This document shows positions 3,477 to 13,110 of a DNA stretch of 64,000 bases, in pieces. Below the pieces are notes generated by a model. The model was not told the DNA's origin, made no database searches, and saw only the letters and a list, made by a program, of their open reading frames with translations. Within the stretch, counting starts at the first letter, position 1, and each line of letters begins with the position of its first letter. The translations under genes and the position numbers were made by a program. Location of the stretch: sequence record OM456492.1, one strand, 5' to 3'.

Positions 3477-3502
3477 ACCCCCTTACCCGTGGGCAAGGAG
3501 GC
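3477..3502 (-). terminator. Probable intrinsic terminator
   Basis: G:U-containing stem GCCTCCTTGCCC-AC-GGGTAAGGGGGT then TTTTT on the minus strand. Confidence 0.65.
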
Positions 3503-3507
3503 AAACC

Positions 3508-3990
3508 TTACAGTTGGTTTTCTTCGCGGTCGTCTGTCAGGACGGCTGCGCAGATAAAGCGCGCGAGTTTCAATTTCGCAGCCGCTGTCTCCTCTGCAGA
3601 CGGATTCGGGTCAACCGGCGCAGCCAAATCAACATCTGCCAGCTCTTCCGCGTATTTCTCAGCAGCTTCATCGAAGCCTGCACGGATACCTGCCAAAAGG
3701 TCTTGTACTTCATCGCTTGGCACAGGACCATCGATAAGAATCTTCTGAGCGTCAGACGGTTCCACATCAGCAAAGTTCATTTCGTTTAACATGCCAATGC
3801 GTTCTGCGTTAGAGGTGATGAGTTGTGCCAACAGTTTTTCAAAACGGTTGATATGCTCATCGTCCAACGGTTGACCGGTCAGTAGCTCGTAGTAGCGGGC
3901 CATAAGTGTGTTCGCGTCGGCCCCTTCCTCATGACGCACGCCTAAATCAAAATCGTGCTGAGGGAGCTGACCTAATTCGATCATATCCAT
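3508..3990 (-). CDS. Acidic hypothetical protein
   Basis: ORF 3508..4002; SD GAGG favours the MDMIELG start at 3990; TATGACCC motif just upstream. Confidence 0.85.
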   Translation of the reverse strand: MDMIELGQLPQHDFDLGVRHEEGADANTLMARYYELLTGQPLDDEHINRFEKLLAQLITSNAERIGMLNEMNFADVEPSDAQKILIDGPVPSDEVQDLLAGIRAGFDEAAEKYAEELADVDLAAPVDPNPSAEETAAAKLKLARFICAAVLTDDREENQL

Positions 3991-4012
3991 AGTTAACCTC
4001 AACGGTATTTAA

Positions 4013-4030: not shown

Positions 4031-4309
4031 TTACGCCGTTACCGGAACAGGGGTGATTAACAGCTCCCCTTCCACCTCACGTAGCTGATAACCGTACATG
4101 ACGTTGTAGGATTTAATACCGTCGCGCTGTTTGGCTTTCGCGACGAGTTTTTCTAACACGCGACTATGTGCACGAGTCATTTCTTCTTTCGAATAAACGA
4201 CTTGGAGTACGTGCTGTTCGTCAATGACGGCACGAAACTGCATCACATCACCGTCTTCAACGTTGTAAACGACTTCTTTAGACTTCGACACTGTACGATT
4301 AATTTGCAT
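4031..4309 (-). CDS. Hypothetical protein
   Basis: ORF 4031..4321; SD GGAG favours the MQINRT start. Confidence 0.8.
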   Translation of the reverse strand: MQINRTVSKSKEVVYNVEDGDVMQFRAVIDEQHVLQVVYSKEEMTRAHSRVLEKLVAKAKQRDGIKSYNVMYGYQLREVEGELLITPVPVTA

Positions 4310-5111
4310 TATCTTCTCCATTACTAGTTTTCAGAGTACGTCCGTACACATAACTTTCGGGCAGCCAACCGTTTTCTAATAACCACATTGCGGCAGGCCC
4401 CCCAGTATATTGGTGGTAGGTGTAAATCAGTTCATCCCCCACCGGTAATTCAGACTGGATACAGTGCATCAACAGCCCGAACTCCTCTCGGCTTAGAGTA
4501 ACCACCCCTTCTGCGGTAAACCATCCACCGATAACCCAGCGATGCCCACGGTGCGAAAGCACTGTCAACTTGTAGCTATCAGCGTTTCGCCACGACATCA
4601 GCCTCCCGCCCGTAACGAGCGTTGAGTAGATAGAGCTTGTACCGTAAAGCATCCTAACCCAATCCAAGAACGCTTTCTTACTATCGAACAACGAACTAAC
4701 GTCCCCACAGAAATCCTCATCGTGGCTAGGCACCGATGAATTAATTTTGCGATAGTTTACCGTTTCGCAACAAAAGCCCATGCGTCCATATTCGTCCCCT
4801 TCAGAACGAGTAAAATGCATCGCGTAGTTACACCCCGCTGAGCGGAGTAAAGCATCCGCAAGCGAGGTTAACTGGGCGTCTAAAGCACGAACCATGTTGA
4901 TAACTTCTAACATGTATCCGTGGTCCAGACAGAGCACGATCGCGTCTGGCGCAACTGTGTCCCGACTGAATACTTCAAAGATTCGGTAGTAAAGACGACG
5001 TTCATCTTGTAACGTGGAAGGATCGATATCATTTAACAACGATAACGCTTTACGGTCTTCCAACCACGTTCGGTCCAGAATCCTCTCCGTGCGTTCGATA
5101 ACTCTCAGCAT
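4299..5111 (-). CDS. Hypothetical protein
   Basis: 270-aa ORF, SD GGAG. Confidence 0.85.
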   Translation of the reverse strand: MLRVIERTERILDRTWLEDRKALSLLNDIDPSTLQDERRLYYRIFEVFSRDTVAPDAIVLCLDHGYMLEVINMVRALDAQLTSLADALLRSAGCNYAMHFTRSEGDEYGRMGFCCETVNYRKINSSVPSHDEDFCGDVSSLFDSKKAFLDWVRMLYGTSSIYSTLVTGGRLMSWRNADSYKLTVLSHRGHRWVIGGWFTAEGVVTLSREEFGLLMHCIQSELPVGDELIYTYHQYTGGPAAMWLLENGWLPESYVYGRTLKTSNGEDNAN

Positions 5112-5120
5112 ATTCTCTCC

Positions 5121-5924
5121 TTACGCAAGGGTGTAATGATGCGTGATTACACGATACTCTAACCCTTCGATAGAAGGAAGCTCGTGCTCTATCGCAACAC
5201 CCATGTTGACCTTCTTACCTTTCTGTCCCGCCAAATGCAAAATGGCATGGTAGTGTTTTAGAAACTCTACCGAGTAGGCAATCGGGTCAAAAGTTTGGCA
5301 GCAGAATTGCTCAGTAATGATGCTCTTCGGGAACTCCTTATAGAGCATTAATGAAAACGGTTTCTGGCCGTGCAGCCCCACAAACGCAGAGACAAAACCA
5401 TTTGCTAACTCGCCCAACATCTCTCGCGTTCCTGCGTCTTTTAGCGTAGGTCGCATCAGATAGCAAATATCTTGGGTTTGTTCTAATGACAATGTCTCCA
5501 ACGGGACAACTGATGGGTCTGACGTAAAACCGTATTTCGGACTAACAGTAATCTCCACACGTTTCGTTACAGCTTCGAACCCCAGACGCTGGTATAGTGC
5601 TGCGTGTTCGGTGTCGTGCGGGAAACAGGTAATATCGAGCATCTGCACTTCCAGGAGTCGCGTTAAACGCTTCCACTCGTGGAACAGGGGCTCGGAGAGC
5701 ACGTGCAGCTCGTAGATGTAGTAAACAGTACCTGAACGACATCCACGAAAATACATTTGCGCGCGACCGCTATTGCTCAACACTAACCAATGATCGTCTT
5801 CTTGGTCTGCGACGGGTCGCAAATCTTGAATCCGTTCGCGGAGTTGCCCCAAGGTGGTCAATCGACCACTAAACTCTACGGTCAGGTCGTTTTTGTCCAT
5901 ACCGTATAGATTAAATAGTTGCAT
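5121..5924 (-). CDS. Divergent GNAT-fold protein
   Basis: YIYELHV (beta-4-like) and DTEHAALYQRLGF (GNAT motif B-like); the acetyl-CoA R/QxxGxG loop is not evident. Confidence 0.55.
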   Translation of the reverse strand: MQLFNLYGMDKNDLTVEFSGRLTTLGQLRERIQDLRPVADQEDDHWLVLSNSGRAQMYFRGCRSGTVYYIYELHVLSEPLFHEWKRLTRLLEVQMLDITCFPHDTEHAALYQRLGFEAVTKRVEITVSPKYGFTSDPSVVPLETLSLEQTQDICYLMRPTLKDAGTREMLGELANGFVSAFVGLHGQKPFSLMLYKEFPKSIITEQFCCQTFDPIAYSVEFLKHYHAILHLAGQKGKKVNMGVAIEHELPSIEGLEYRVITHHYTLA

Positions 5925-5933
5925 GTTGGTACC

Positions 5934-6752
5934 TTATAAGGTGCCGATTAGCTCTGTCACCGCTTTACGCTTATTCGCATCCGCAGACATATATCGACCT
6001 ACCTGAACTTCGCGCCAAGTAAAGCCGTAATAAATATCGCGTGTGAGTAACGTATCTGCGTTTGACAGAACGACCTTATTGCCATCGGCAGCTTGTTGTT
6101 TTAAAAGTTTCGCTAACTCGCGGTGGTCAGCTTGTGAAAATTCTTTGCTGTGATACTGCGCGTGTTTAGCCGTATCCGAAAGTGGGATGTAAGGCGGGTC
6201 AGCGTATATCACAGCGTTAGATGGGCACTTATTTAGGATGTCGCGGAAGTCCGCGCAGAGCAATTCGACGTTGGTTTCCGAACAACGTTTTGCCCACGCC
6301 AGAATTTCCTCTTCAGGGAAATAGACACCGTTCGGGTGTTGACCATAGGGCACGTTAAACCCACCCGACTGATTGTATCTGCACAAACCATTGTAACCAT
6401 GACGTGTAAGATACAGGAACATCGCGGCGCGCTGGAGATTAGGTTTCCCCGTGGTTGCTTCGCTGTTAAATCCCTCGCGTCGTTCCATGTAGAGACCGCG
6501 GTCCGTCCCATTTGCAAAGAGCGCCTTTGCTTCCAGAATCAGCGCTTCCGGACGATCGCGCGCCATGGTCAGTAACTCGATTAAGTCCGGGTTCGTGTCG
6601 CCGAGAATATAGTTCGGGTATTTAGTGTTTAAAAACACTGACCCTGCACCCACAAACGGTTCAACGAAATACTCAGCATCTGGAAGCACCTGTAGCAGCT
6701 CGGGAAGTACGCGACTCTTACCACCCATCCATTTTAAAATTGGTCTTATCAC
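5934..6752 (-). CDS. dam: DNA adenine methyltransferase (Dam/D12 family)
   Basis: PILKWMGGKS, FVEPFVGAGSVF (SAM binding), YNGLCRYNQSGGFNVPYG and catalytic IYADPPY; GTG start. Confidence 0.95.
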   Translation of the reverse strand: MIRPILKWMGGKSRVLPELLQVLPDAEYFVEPFVGAGSVFLNTKYPNYILGDTNPDLIELLTMARDRPEALILEAKALFANGTDRGLYMERREGFNSEATTGKPNLQRAAMFLYLTRHGYNGLCRYNQSGGFNVPYGQHPNGVYFPEEEILAWAKRCSETNVELLCADFRDILNKCPSNAVIYADPPYIPLSDTAKHAQYHSKEFSQADHRELAKLLKQQAADGNKVVLSNADTLLTRDIYYGFTWREVQVGRYMSADANKRKAVTELIGTL

Positions 6753-6758
6753 CCGTTA

Positions 6759-7757
6759 TCATCCTCTCATGCCAGATTGAAACATATCACTAATAGTCAG
6801 CCTGGTTGTAGTCTCCACCGGAATGCTAGGTTCTTCTTTCAGCACACGATCGGTGCGGTTCCCATTCACCCGTTTCCAGCTAATAAGTTCAGGATCGCGT
6901 TTCAGCGTTAGTGTACGTAGTACCTGCTTGCAACGTAAGATGTTGCCATACAGGTGATTTGCTGGATCATTATCAGCAGCTGTTTCAATATAGACTTGGT
7001 CGGAATGACGTTGTGCGAAATCGAATAGCGCGCCCATTAGCCGGCGGCCAATGCCACGTTTACGGTGTGTAGGTGCAACGGTTAAACCAGAAAGTTCAAC
7101 GACGCCTGGTGTAACCAAGCGCATCTGGGCAACACCGACGATATCATGACCGTCTCGCCAAATTGCAGTCTCCACATTAGCGTGCTGAATTCTTGCTATT
7201 ACTGTTTCTGCTAACGGACCAATGTGCGTATAGTAGCCACGCATATCGTATTCTAGCTCTTCGCAAATTGCACCGCTAATCAAATTCAGGATAACGTCTT
7301 TATCTTCCTTGGTAAGTTCTGCGTATGCATCACCAGAAATAATCTTGATTTCCGGTGCGGTGATTACTTTGTCAAACAGTTTGGAATGACATGCCCAAAC
7401 GATATCTGAAAGAACAAACCCTTTTTCGACCAGTTTTTGTTCAACATCGTCAGTAGGTGCTGGACACGACATATATTCGAATCCGGTATGGTCGAGCACA
7501 AGGGCCAAACCAACTTTATCGAACGCCCCAGGTACAAACTCCTCAAAATAGTGACAGGTTAGTGTAGGGTCACCGTGTCGATAGGTGGCCACTAAATAAC
7601 CCTCCCAGGTTTCTTTATTCTTCACCACGTAAACAGAATAAGTCTCGTCCTTTAGAAACTCTTTTAGGCGGCGTGCTCGTACAGTATCGGTACCGACGTT
7701 ATTTCGGAACTCGGCAGTGCGGATGCTGGTGCGAAACAATTTAGCCACAGTTTTCAT
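6759..7757 (-). CDS. Two-domain GNAT acetyltransferase
   Basis: C-terminal domain LTVAPTHRKRGIGRRLM (motif A) and NDPANHLY; N-terminal half has a degenerate GNAT-like LVEKGF; start moved to MKTVAK (SD GAGG; a terminator lies in the extra 5' part). Confidence 0.85.
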   Translation of the reverse strand: MKTVAKLFRTSIRTAEFRNNVGTDTVRARRLKEFLKDETYSVYVVKNKETWEGYLVATYRHGDPTLTCHYFEEFVPGAFDKVGLALVLDHTGFEYMSCPAPTDDVEQKLVEKGFVLSDIVWACHSKLFDKVITAPEIKIISGDAYAELTKEDKDVILNLISGAICEELEYDMRGYYTHIGPLAETVIARIQHANVETAIWRDGHDIVGVAQMRLVTPGVVELSGLTVAPTHRKRGIGRRLMGALFDFAQRHSDQVYIETAADNDPANHLYGNILRCKQVLRTLTLKRDPELISWKRVNGNRTDRVLKEEPSIPVETTTRLTISDMFQSGMRG

Positions 7758-7818
7758 TGTAATGCCCTCAAAAGGTATTGCTGTCACAACATGAGGATAA
7801 TGCGTAAAAAGACAAAAA

Positions 7819-7844
7819 ATTAAGGGGTCCGAAGACCCCTTAAT
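7819..7844 (-). terminator. Intrinsic terminator, cUUCGg loop
   Basis: 11-bp stem ATTAAGGGGTC/GACCCCTTAAT plus T tract on the minus strand. Confidence 0.9.
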
Positions 7845-7846
7845 GA

Positions 7847-8503
7847 TTACAGTTCCGGTTTGGAGGCAAGCGCCGTCCAAGTTTCGGAATGTTTGACACT
7901 GACGTGCGCTAAGCGATTCACCATGAACGCAAATTTGTCCATATGCTTCTGCACTTCGTTATCAGTCAGATTACCAGCGATAACTTTACCGTCTTTGGTC
8001 AGCACGATATAGCCGTGGTTGTTGTCTACCGTAGTGAACGCCACATCAATCGTAACCGGGTACAGTTTCACCAGCGTCGGCAGAATATGACCAACACGAT
8101 CGGCCATACCCGCAAGCTGGCCACAAAGGTCGGCTTTATCCTGCATGAACAAACGCAACATCGCTACTGCAAACACCGGATAGATATTTTCGATTTGCGT
8201 GTCGTAACGAGACAGACCGATAACTTCATCACCGCGGGTCAGCACCATGTTGTTCAGATGTGCGCCTTTATAGATGGTAAAGCGTACGTCGCTACCAAGG
8301 TTAACCGCAACGATTTCCTGACCAAGGTCAATCGGATATTCGCGCTCGATGTGAATTGTTTTCAGACGCTCACTGATCGGTACAATCACATCCGGCTTCG
8401 GAATGCTAGATGTATGCGTGGATTCAGTGGTGCGCGTTTTTGTGGATTTAACCACGCTGCTTGCCATTGAATCTTTTGCTACAGTTTTAGGGGCCTTCGC
8501 CAT
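7847..8503 (-). CDS. Hypothetical protein with Ser/Thr-rich N-terminus
   Basis: 218-aa ORF, SD AAGGAG. Confidence 0.85.
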   Translation of the reverse strand: MAKAPKTVAKDSMASSVVKSTKTRTTESTHTSSIPKPDVIVPISERLKTIHIEREYPIDLGQEIVAVNLGSDVRFTIYKGAHLNNMVLTRGDEVIGLSRYDTQIENIYPVFAVAMLRLFMQDKADLCGQLAGMADRVGHILPTLVKLYPVTIDVAFTTVDNNHGYIVLTKDGKVIAGNLTDNEVQKHMDKFAFMVNRLAHVSVKHSETWTALASKPEL

Positions 8504-10079: not shown

Positions 10080-10155
10080 TTTATTCTTCCCCAAAAGTTT
10101 AATTAATTGTAGTGGTGTCACAATATAGCGACCAAACGTAAAGAAAAAAATAAAA

Positions 10156-12642: not shown

Positions 12643-13110
12643 TTAAAGCTCCTTTACCATATCCTGGTATTCAGTTCGGAATCCGAAACGTTCATAAAAC
12701 GCAATAGCACGGTCGTTATTACCGAGCACGTTAAGCTGCATCCATGCACAGCCTTTTGATTTGCCGTAATTTTCTACGGCTTCAATTAACTCATGCCCGA
12801 CGCCTTGAGAGCGAACCGATTCGTCTACAAAGAAGTTATATACCCAGAGGAAACGTTGTCCCTTTTTGGTGTAGCCAAAGGTGATGAAGCCCACAGCCAC
12901 ACCACGGTCATCAACGGCGCAAGCGCACAGCGTACCTTCACCCCAAACCTCCTCCAGTTTTGAGATTTGATTAAACCCTTCACGACCGTTTAAGTCGGCA
13001 AGTTTTATTTTCTGATCGTCGTATAACTTGTTGTGTAGTCCTAACAAGTCCGCGTAGTATTTCTTTCCATACGGAGAGTTGGGCTTGGTGACAAAAACAA
13101 TTTTCATCAT
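12643..13110 (-). CDS. GNAT acetyltransferase
   Basis: VYNFFVDESVRSQGVGHELI (motif A) and LNVLGNNDRAIAFYERFGF (motif B). Confidence 0.92.
   Translation of the reverse strand: MMKIVFVTKPNSPYGKKYYADLLGLHNKLYDDQKIKLADLNGREGFNQISKLEEVWGEGTLCACAVDDRGVAVGFITFGYTKKGQRFLWVYNFFVDESVRSQGVGHELIEAVENYGKSKGCAWMQLNVLGNNDRAIAFYERFGFRTEYQDMVKEL

Follow-up and report, generated by a model that had tools for sequence, protein, structure and literature searches.

A Dam-type methyltransferase gene embedded in an array of predicted tandem-GNAT paralogues in Salmonella phage SaP7

The DNA considered here, referred to below as the window, is a stretch of 64,000 nucleotides from Salmonella phage SaP7 (OM456492.1), a member of the species Seoulvirus SPN3US, and the element under study is a cassette in which a dam gene is flanked by two genes for proteins of the GNAT fold. 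Over 4.4 kb around the cassette, the sequence matches SaP7 at 100% identity and SPN3US, the type phage of the species, at 97.3%. The numbering of SPN3US is used throughout: gp104 (gene A, SPN3US_0104), gp105 (gene B, Dam, SPN3US_0105), gp106 (gene C, SPN3US_0106) and the next gene, gp107 (gene D). The first three are consecutive open reading frames (ORFs) on the minus strand, separated by gaps of 6 bp (gp104 stop to the GTG of dam) and 9 bp (dam stop to the ATG of gp106). In agreement with a preliminary description of this DNA, the minus-strand gene positions and the two gap sizes were confirmed from the ORF list and the sequence. A 9-bp gap also separates gp106 from gp107, and the genes are densely packed along the entire strand; the close spacing is not peculiar to the gp104-Dam-gp106 trio. 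The annotation of Dam and gp104 is already present in GenBank. New here are the observation that the dam gene is embedded within a tandem-GNAT paralogue array and the assignment, by structure prediction, of gp106 and gp107, the "hypothetical" genes that follow dam, as tandem-GNAT-fold paralogues of gp104 without a cofactor site.

The product of gp105 is expected, on the basis of its sequence, to be an orphan N6-adenine DNA methyltransferase with GATC specificity. It matches PF02086 of Pfam (D12 class) with an E value of 2e-53 and TIGR00571 with 255.8 bits (cut-off 114.85), and scores 245 bits against the equivalog for the enterobacterial enzyme, which is under the 441-bit cut-off of that model. 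The match to Escherichia coli Dam (PDB ID: 2g1p) covers the full length (E 7e-58), whereas the match to T4 Dam has an E value of 3e-9. Both the FxGxG motif for S-adenosylmethionine (AdoMet) and the DPPY motif are intact, the NGLCRYN recognition stretch of E. coli Dam is conserved, and the stretch aligned to residues 119-126 of the E. coli enzyme is identical, which suggests GATC as the target. The best PADLOC model is that of an orphan methyltransferase. Neither the genes flanking dam nor gp103 and gp107 contain a nuclease domain by Pfam and NCBIfam, and thus no cognate restriction endonuclease of a type II restriction-modification system is present among them. In the GenBank records of SaP7 and SPN3US, Dam begins at an internal ATG 24 nt in, which leaves a gap of 30 bp and removes eight conserved N-terminal residues. 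The GTG start is better supported than this ATG, because TIGR00571 aligns from residue 2 and an identical N-terminal extent is seen in the orthologues of SPAsTU, pEa_SNUABM_29, phiEaH2, ChrisDB, Kwan and Huxley.

Upstream of dam, gp104 begins with an ATG behind GAGGG. A longer, TTG-started ORF that extends up to position 7880 was rejected, as it crosses both the stop of the preceding gene and a terminator. The product of gp104 matches PF00583 with 55.1 bits (cut-off 20.7, E 1.1e-14) over residues 194-270 only, and its best NCBIfam match is RimI. Among PDB sequences, the profile of the gp104 family matches VipF, in its C-terminal GNAT domain, as well as other GNATs. The Q/RxxGxG loop, which reads RKRGIG, is found in the C-terminal half only; G237 and R238 are invariant in the family, and the orthologues of Erwinia phages carry R instead of G at the fourth position of the motif. 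Taken as predicted from these features, gp104 is probably an N-acetyltransferase dependent on acetyl-coenzyme A (acetyl-CoA). The N-terminal half is not covered by any Pfam match, and its predicted order of secondary-structure elements is compatible, at low confidence, with a GNAT. This half would represent a degenerate GNAT-like domain, as indicated mainly by the full-length structural match between the gp104 orthologue of phage Kwan and gp106 that is described below. An AlphaFold2 prediction of gp104 itself from a six-sequence alignment gave a poor model, with a predicted local distance difference test (pLDDT) value of 44.7; the top Foldseek match of this model in the PDB is still VipF, over 287 columns, which is weak corroboration only. 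The C-terminal tail of gp104 (6759-6860, minus strand) has a conserved G-x-R-G end in the SPN3US-type relatives, and the Erwinia-phage orthologues are without this tail.

No match to gp106 was found in Pfam, NCBIfam, PADLOC or the PDB sequences. In PHROGs the protein matches an unannotated PHROG only, and its family comprises only 11 representative clusters in a profile search of 1.8 billion proteins. An AlphaFold2 model of gp106 was obtained from a 13-sequence alignment with a pLDDT of 89.2 and a predicted template modelling score (pTM) of 0.77. The leading Foldseek matches of this model in the PDB are tandem GNATs, all at a probability of 1.0: VipF (E 2.5e-10), MAB_4324, 3tt2, ORF14, MshD and Eis. 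Further PDB matches are N-myristoyltransferase, FemX and the synthases Sbb17 and Sba18, and the BFVD models of gp106 orthologues match the gp106 model with template modelling (TM) scores of 0.85-0.96. As modelled, gp106 has a degenerate GNAT fold that is in fact a double GNAT, which is demonstrable by structure prediction only. Neither half shows, in the family alignment, a conserved loop with Gly after its fourth strand, and the second half is without the fourth helix; the classical acetyl-CoA site is predicted to be missing from gp106. The earlier proposal that dam is flanked by two GNAT-fold genes, one with an intact motif and one degenerate, is therefore borne out, by the RKRGIG loop of gp104 and by AlphaFold2 and Foldseek for gp106. 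The accompanying picture of a sandwich of GNATs is correct as to gene identities and needs revision in one respect, as both flanking proteins are tandem, two-domain GNATs and not single ones.

The gp106 model also relates the three GNAT-like proteins to each other. In BFVD, the best match outside the gp106 family is A0A1B2IE00 (TM 0.65, E 5.6e-15), which was identified by exact-sequence look-up as gp131 of phage Kwan, an orthologue of gp104. With this score, gp106 is nearer to the gp104 family than to any solved tandem GNAT (TM 0.52 or lower). A second BFVD match, J7KKF1 (TM 0.46-0.48, E 3e-8), was identified in the same way as gp030 of phiEaH2, an orthologue of gp107 to which it is 47% identical. 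From these models, gp107 is a probable third tandem-GNAT-like paralogue, and gp104, gp106 and gp107 are predicted to be diverged paralogues with a tandem-GNAT fold, of which gp104 alone keeps the cofactor site, in its second half. At the level of sequence, a full-length hhalign comparison of the gp106 and gp104 families gave a weak, though colinear, alignment (probability 5%, P 0.007). Domain-wise hhalign yielded nothing among the four half-proteins of gp104 and gp106, nor any match between gp106 and the GNAT domain of gp104, and the comparisons of the gp107 profile with those of gp106 and gp104 were not significant. Because the sequence-level tests are weak, the paralogy rests on predicted structures. 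In ChrisDB, two genes (gp123 and gp124) stand at the gp107 position, which suggests an additional duplication. Weak matches to the gp106 model (TM 0.29-0.40) were also seen for the BFVD entries A0A1B2IE03, A0A1B2IDM8, A0A1B2IBG0 and A0A8E7G123 (about 214 residues; two named as Kwan and Huxley proteins, two without a name), and the GNAT-like family may, by these models, have further members elsewhere in these phage genomes.

Two strong hairpins with T-runs on the minus strand bound the region that contains the cassette, and there is none in between (Table 1). Read from sequence, the terminator-bounded unit would consist of six genes, gp104-Dam-gp106-gp107-gp108-gp109, and not of three. Co-transcription of the trio is likely, because the genes lie between the two terminators. 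Of the co-expressed module that had been put forward for the trio, the co-expression is thus plausible, whereas the trio does not form a separate unit. Hairpins with T-runs form a series on the minus strand (10177-10156, 9449-9426, 7844-7819, 3502-3477 and 2427-2402) that cuts the strand into short units; the loop is TTCG in four of the five and CACG at 3502-3477. Directly after terminator T-runs lies the sequence TTTACG-N14/15-TTGTGACA.CA.TAC, which has only two exact copies in the window. One copy lies upstream of gp104, and the other (10109-10123, minus strand) is placed likewise ahead of the gene for thymidylate kinase. The TTGTGACA.CA.TAC motif is conserved among SPN3US-level relatives only and is a candidate for a phage promoter or 5' leader element. 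A scan for sigma-70 promoters gave 13 matches, compared with 17.7 in shuffled sequence; this model is, besides, not relevant to a phage with its own RNA polymerases. The proteins gp104-107 go unmentioned in the main texts of three mass-spectrometry papers on the SPN3US virion and in supplements of one of them, which is consistent with their being non-virion proteins.

Table 1 Features of the cassette and of the transcription unit that contains it (positions in the window; aa, amino acids).
Feature	Position	Strand	Remarks
gp104 (gene A)	6759..7757	-	332 aa; tandem-GNAT (predicted); PF00583 match, phrog_8663
gp104 N-terminal half (~residues 1-135)	7353..7757	-	putative degenerate GNAT-like domain, without CoA motif
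gp104 C-terminal half (~residues 140-300)	6858..7340	-	canonical GNAT; Pfam/NCBIfam/PDB profile matches at ~180-282
gp104 acetyl-CoA pyrophosphate-binding motif RKRGIG (residues 232-237)	7047..7064	-	read from sequence
Dam (gene B, gp105)	5934..6752	-	272 aa, GTG start; PF02086, TIGR00571
DPPY motif of Dam (residues 185-188)	6189..6200	-	invariant in seven orthologues
gp106 (gene C)	5121..5924	-	267 aa; tandem-GNAT fold by AlphaFold2 and Foldseek
gp106 halves	N-half 5535..5924, C-half 5124..5534	-	neither with a recognisable CoA motif
gp107 (gene D)	4299..5111	-	270 aa; probable third tandem-GNAT-like paralogue
gp108-like small ORF	4031..4321	-	overlaps the end of gene D
gp109-like ORF	3508..4002	-	last gene in the unit
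Hairpin terminator, 5' boundary	7819..7844	-	11-bp stem, UUCG loop, T-run; just past the gp103 stop
Hairpin terminator, closing the six-gene unit	3477..3502	-	just past the gp109 stop
Candidate phage promoter/5' leader motif TTGTGACA.CA.TAC	7775..7789	-	between terminator and gp104 start

The distribution of the genes was examined by tblastn against 50,697 phage records, in which gp106 was found in 64 and gp104 in 59. All matches are to SPN3US-type phages (including SPAsTU and pEa_SNUABM_29) or to Erwinia jumbo phages of the Erskinevirus, Machinavirus, ChrisDB/Caitlin and Wellingtonvirus groups. Fragmentary proteins of eleven SPFM phages (SPFM1, 5-10, 12, 14, 15 and 20) were excluded as assembly noise; in the SPFM records LR535901, 903-908, 911-913 and 917 the locus is matched in many short pieces, and the protein databases have received from them versions of gp104 and gp106 that are fragmentary or scrambled. 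The gene order gp104-Dam-gp106-gp107 is kept in SPN3US, SPAsTU, pEa_SNUABM_29, ChrisDB, Huxley and Kwan. The five records with gp106 and without gp104 are exactly those of Erskinevirus (phiEaH2 twice, Stratton, and Asesino twice), and the absence of gp104 is genome-wide. At the phiEaH2 and Asesino loci, Dam-gp106-gp107 is present and gp103 and gp104 are both missing. Since the Erskinevirus gp106 is the closest to that of Seoulvirus (43% identity, versus 25-30% for the other groups), the absence of gp104 from Erskinevirus is most simply a loss. The neighbouring gp103 (218 residues; 7847-8503, minus strand) is gone from Erskinevirus along with gp104, and the proteins at the corresponding position in Machinavirus and Wellingtonvirus align poorly. 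In the SEGD1 record, the orthologue of gp104 carries no annotation and is interrupted by a single frameshift. Missing from all five Erskinevirus records and frameshifted in SEGD1, gp104 is dispensable to Dam-gp106-gp107, which is kept in every lineage examined. The neighbourhood as a whole, from the thymidylate kinase and helix-turn-helix genes through the small downstream genes, is collinear in all genera examined, and adjacency of genes is therefore weak evidence of coupling. A search of IMG/VR with a five-sequence gp106 alignment returned four loci, only one of which is a further one, on a 246-kb metagenome contig with 42% identity to gp106. Between IMG/VR and the all-cluster profile search, there is no independent genomic context for gp106 beyond this clade of enterobacterial jumbo phages. 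The preliminary description had looked to co-conservation of the genes and to synteny across Chimalliviridae; the former is incomplete, given the state of gp104 in Erskinevirus and SEGD1, and the latter does not extend past a single clade of enterobacterial jumbo phages, to which the cassette is confined. Outside the cassette, a separate small single-domain GNAT (154 residues, annotated as an N-acetyltransferase) is encoded on the minus strand at about 12643-13107, adjoining the gene for an internal head protein.

The composition of the window bears on the role of Dam. It contains 116 GATC sites, compared with 224 +/- 15 in dinucleotide-preserving shuffles, and under a second-order Markov model of the window GATC has the lowest observed/expected ratio (0.37) of the 256 tetranucleotides. 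The phage's own genome avoids GATC above all other tetranucleotides, although it encodes a GATC-type Dam, and this observation is likewise new here. Counter-selection of GATC in enterobacterial phages has long been known from the mismatch-repair literature, and a phage that has a GATC methylase and still avoids the site fits this pattern. Together, the avoidance of GATC and the presence of Dam suggest that the enzyme shields the sites that remain. The next most depleted non-palindromic tetranucleotide is TATG/CATA, with an observed/expected ratio of 0.62. TATG-like motifs are late promoters in phiKZ-type phages, and if such promoters apply to this phage, the depletion of TATG could reflect avoidance of spurious promoters.

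The locus is proposed, with somewhat better than even confidence, to be a six-gene non-virion operon in which Dam lies inside an array of tandem-GNAT paralogues and methylation and acylation have no chemical link. Given that gp104, gp106 and gp107 are structural paralogues, the arrangement of GNATs on both sides of dam is most simply an array of paralogues with Dam in it. Between Seoulvirus and the Machinavirus and Wellingtonvirus groups, identity is 54-57% for Dam, 25-30% for gp106, 26-30% for gp104 and 18-26% for gp107, and a slowly evolving Dam of host type amid fast-evolving paralogues most simply suggests insertion into the array. In this proposal, gp104, gp106 and gp107, in the operon gp104-gp109 of a nucleus-forming jumbo phage, would most likely have arisen by tandem duplication. 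The Dam gene, of enterobacterial host type, would most likely have been acquired horizontally before the split of Seoulvirus, Erskinevirus, Machinavirus and Wellingtonvirus. From its family membership, Dam would methylate N6 of the adenine in GATC of the phage DNA, and it would probably keep the remaining GATC sites fully methylated and so protect them against host activities directed at GATC that is unmethylated or hemimethylated. In gp104, the C-terminal half would bind the cofactor and the degenerate N-terminal half would contribute to the acceptor site, on the pattern of MshD and VipF; the acceptor that we infer as most likely is a protein amine, of the host or of the phage. Having lost the CoA signature, gp106 and gp107 would most likely be non-catalytic binding or regulatory proteins. 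The arrangement around dam would then reflect gene history and a shared timing of expression rather than a chemical link.

Several observations weigh against this proposal. The model of gp104 itself is poor, so that the tandem architecture of this protein leans on the BFVD model of an orthologue. A hairpin with a T-run is a consensus match to a terminator and may not hold for the phage's own RNA polymerases. The frameshift in the SEGD1 gp104 may truly inactivate the gene, in a phage that is viable, or may stem from a sequencing error. In the gp106 family, R122, E205 and H263 are near-invariant (at least 90% of the alignment); such conserved polar residues are unexpected for a purely structural protein, and residual catalysis with another donor is possible. 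Finally, the adjacency of Dam and gp106 is invariant, with a 4-nt overlap of the two genes in ChrisDB, and fits a real Dam-gp106 partnership.

Three alternative explanations were considered. One, to which a modest chance is given, is that all three GNAT-like proteins are active transferases on host targets and serve in takeover or counter-defence, on the model of phiKMV Rac and AcrVA5. The donor for gp106 and gp107 would then not be acetyl-CoA; it could be, for instance, an aminoacyl-tRNA, which the Fem-type tandem GNATs use. The conserved polar residues of the gp106 family are in keeping with this explanation, as are the Foldseek matches of gp106 to FemX and to the aminoacyl-tRNA-dependent peptide synthases Sbb17 and Sba18, although the TM scores to FemX and Sbb17 are only 0.38-0.41, under those of the CoA-dependent tandem GNATs. 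Host proteins, for example RNA polymerase or ribosomal proteins, are the predicted targets of jumbo-phage GNATs (PMC7824862); gp104, gp106 and gp107, however, have no PADLOC or anti-defence match, and neither AcrVA5 nor GNAT toxins are among the sequence or fold matches. It is less probable still that gp106, perhaps with gp107, is a pseudo-GNAT accessory subunit that binds Dam and changes its activity, specificity or location, for example by delivery into the phage nucleus, with gp104 unrelated to it. Dam, gp106 and gp107 are adjacent in all lineages examined, including Erskinevirus, which lacks gp103 and gp104, and the gap between Dam and gp106 is at most 9 nt everywhere; the region is collinear throughout, however, so that this adjacency is unspecific. 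The absence of a cofactor motif from gp106, which nevertheless retains a few conserved polar residues, would suit an accessory subunit, but the gp106 family evolves far faster than Dam (25-30% versus 54-57% identity), is limited to this clade, and shows no fusion to or independent co-occurrence with Dam. Moreover, enzymes of the E. coli Dam type act alone in their hosts. That the invariant Dam-gp106-gp107 trio works together in some way is regarded as quite unlikely but worthy of attention. Direct partnership of Dam with gp106, with or without gp107, in which gp106 would be a pseudo-GNAT that serves either as a novel type of methyltransferase accessory subunit or as a CoA-independent transferase that adds a further group to adenine, is considered very unlikely; if true, nucleus-forming jumbo phages would possess, in the Dam-gp106-gp107 trio, a DNA-modification system that had gone unrecognised.

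The coupling of adenine methylation to acylation in one module, which the preliminary description had favoured, is unsupported and is partly contradicted by the natural loss of gp104 in Erskinevirus. As a DNA-modification module, the cassette would have a GNAT-fold protein acylate adenine in the manner of Mom, or N6-methyladenine in GATC, so that the hypermodified base blocks restriction. Such a module would be in keeping with genes that are adjacent, tightly spaced and probably co-transcribed, and with a gp106 that has a GNAT fold and lacks a CoA site, as is also said of Mu Mom. Mom-family GNATs are also present in other jumbo phages, but DNA-modification systems are generally few in the nucleus-forming jumbo phages of group 1 (PMC7824862). 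No Mom-like match was found for gp104, gp106 or gp107 in PHROGs or Pfam, the top 50 BFVD structural matches include no entry of that name, and the tandem-GNAT fold has protein and small-molecule acyltransferases as its nearest structures. Furthermore, Erskinevirus has lost gp104 and kept Dam, and the strong avoidance of GATC suggests that these sites are still a liability and not fully masked. With this evidence, a DNA-modification module of this kind is judged highly improbable. The preferred explanation, a paralogue array with an inserted Dam, allows three orphan families of SPN3US-type phages to be annotated in concrete terms. The Erskinevirus phages that lack gp104 constitute a natural comparison set on a role in DNA modification, and if there is no such role, the locus would represent an ordinary paralogue expansion of host-modifying enzymes together with a host methylase borrowed by a giant phage.

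With respect to known systems, a literature search on SPN3US gp104-107, tandem GNATs in phages and Dam in Chimalliviridae returned nothing that bears on the locus. The analogies drawn earlier to Mom, AcrVA5 and aminoacyl-tRNA-acetylating toxins find no similarity in sequence or fold searches. Mu Mom, a GNAT-fold enzyme for acyl modification of adenine at N6, shares with the phage proteins only the broad superfamily fold and the notion that a GNAT-like protein may do without the classical CoA site, whereas the proteins described here are two-domain, and judged by match names, nothing called Mom is among the Pfam, PHROGs, PDB or top 50 BFVD matches of gp104 or gp106. Likewise, neither AcrVA5 nor a tRNA-acetylating GNAT toxin was found in PDB sequence searches (E up to 1) or among the top fold matches. 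The ORF list contains no gene for a small DNA-binding antitoxin next to the cassette, and the two-domain proteins are unlike TacT, AtaT and ItaT. In PADLOC, Dam matches methyltransferase models only, and gp104, gp106 and gp107 have no match. Single-domain phage GNATs with host proteins as acetylation targets, phiKMV-type Rac among them, are alike in being phage-encoded and in being expressed from non-structural gene blocks (PMC7824862); they differ in having a single domain, and no specific similarity was found. The GNAT of the SPN3US-type phage SEGD1 given as an example in that review (AMR59843.1) lies outside the cassette locus, judged by the accession range of the locus.

The closest known counterparts are E. 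coli Dam and the cellular tandem GNATs. The SaP7 enzyme resembles E. coli Dam in its full-length match, in the retention of the AdoMet, DPPY and NGLCRYN elements, in passing the TIGR00571 cut-off and in having no restriction-enzyme neighbour here. It differs in being phage-encoded, in falling under the enterobacterial equivalog cut-off and in belonging to a genome that itself avoids GATC. The tandem GNATs in question are Legionella VipF (PDB IDs: 6wqc, 7wx5), the Mycobacterium tuberculosis mycothiol synthase MshD (1ozp), M. abscessus MAB_4324 (7q3a) and ORF14 of the clavulanate pathway (2wpw). In contrast to these proteins, to which it has TM scores of 0.45-0.52 and an identity of 10-14%, gp106 is without a recognisable CoA loop in either half and its second domain is without the fourth helix. 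The proteins are alike in carrying two GNAT domains in one chain of about 270-340 residues, and the known tandem GNATs are the top structural matches of both gp106 and the weak gp104 model. In MshD, only one half is reported to have the canonical cofactor site, as in gp104.

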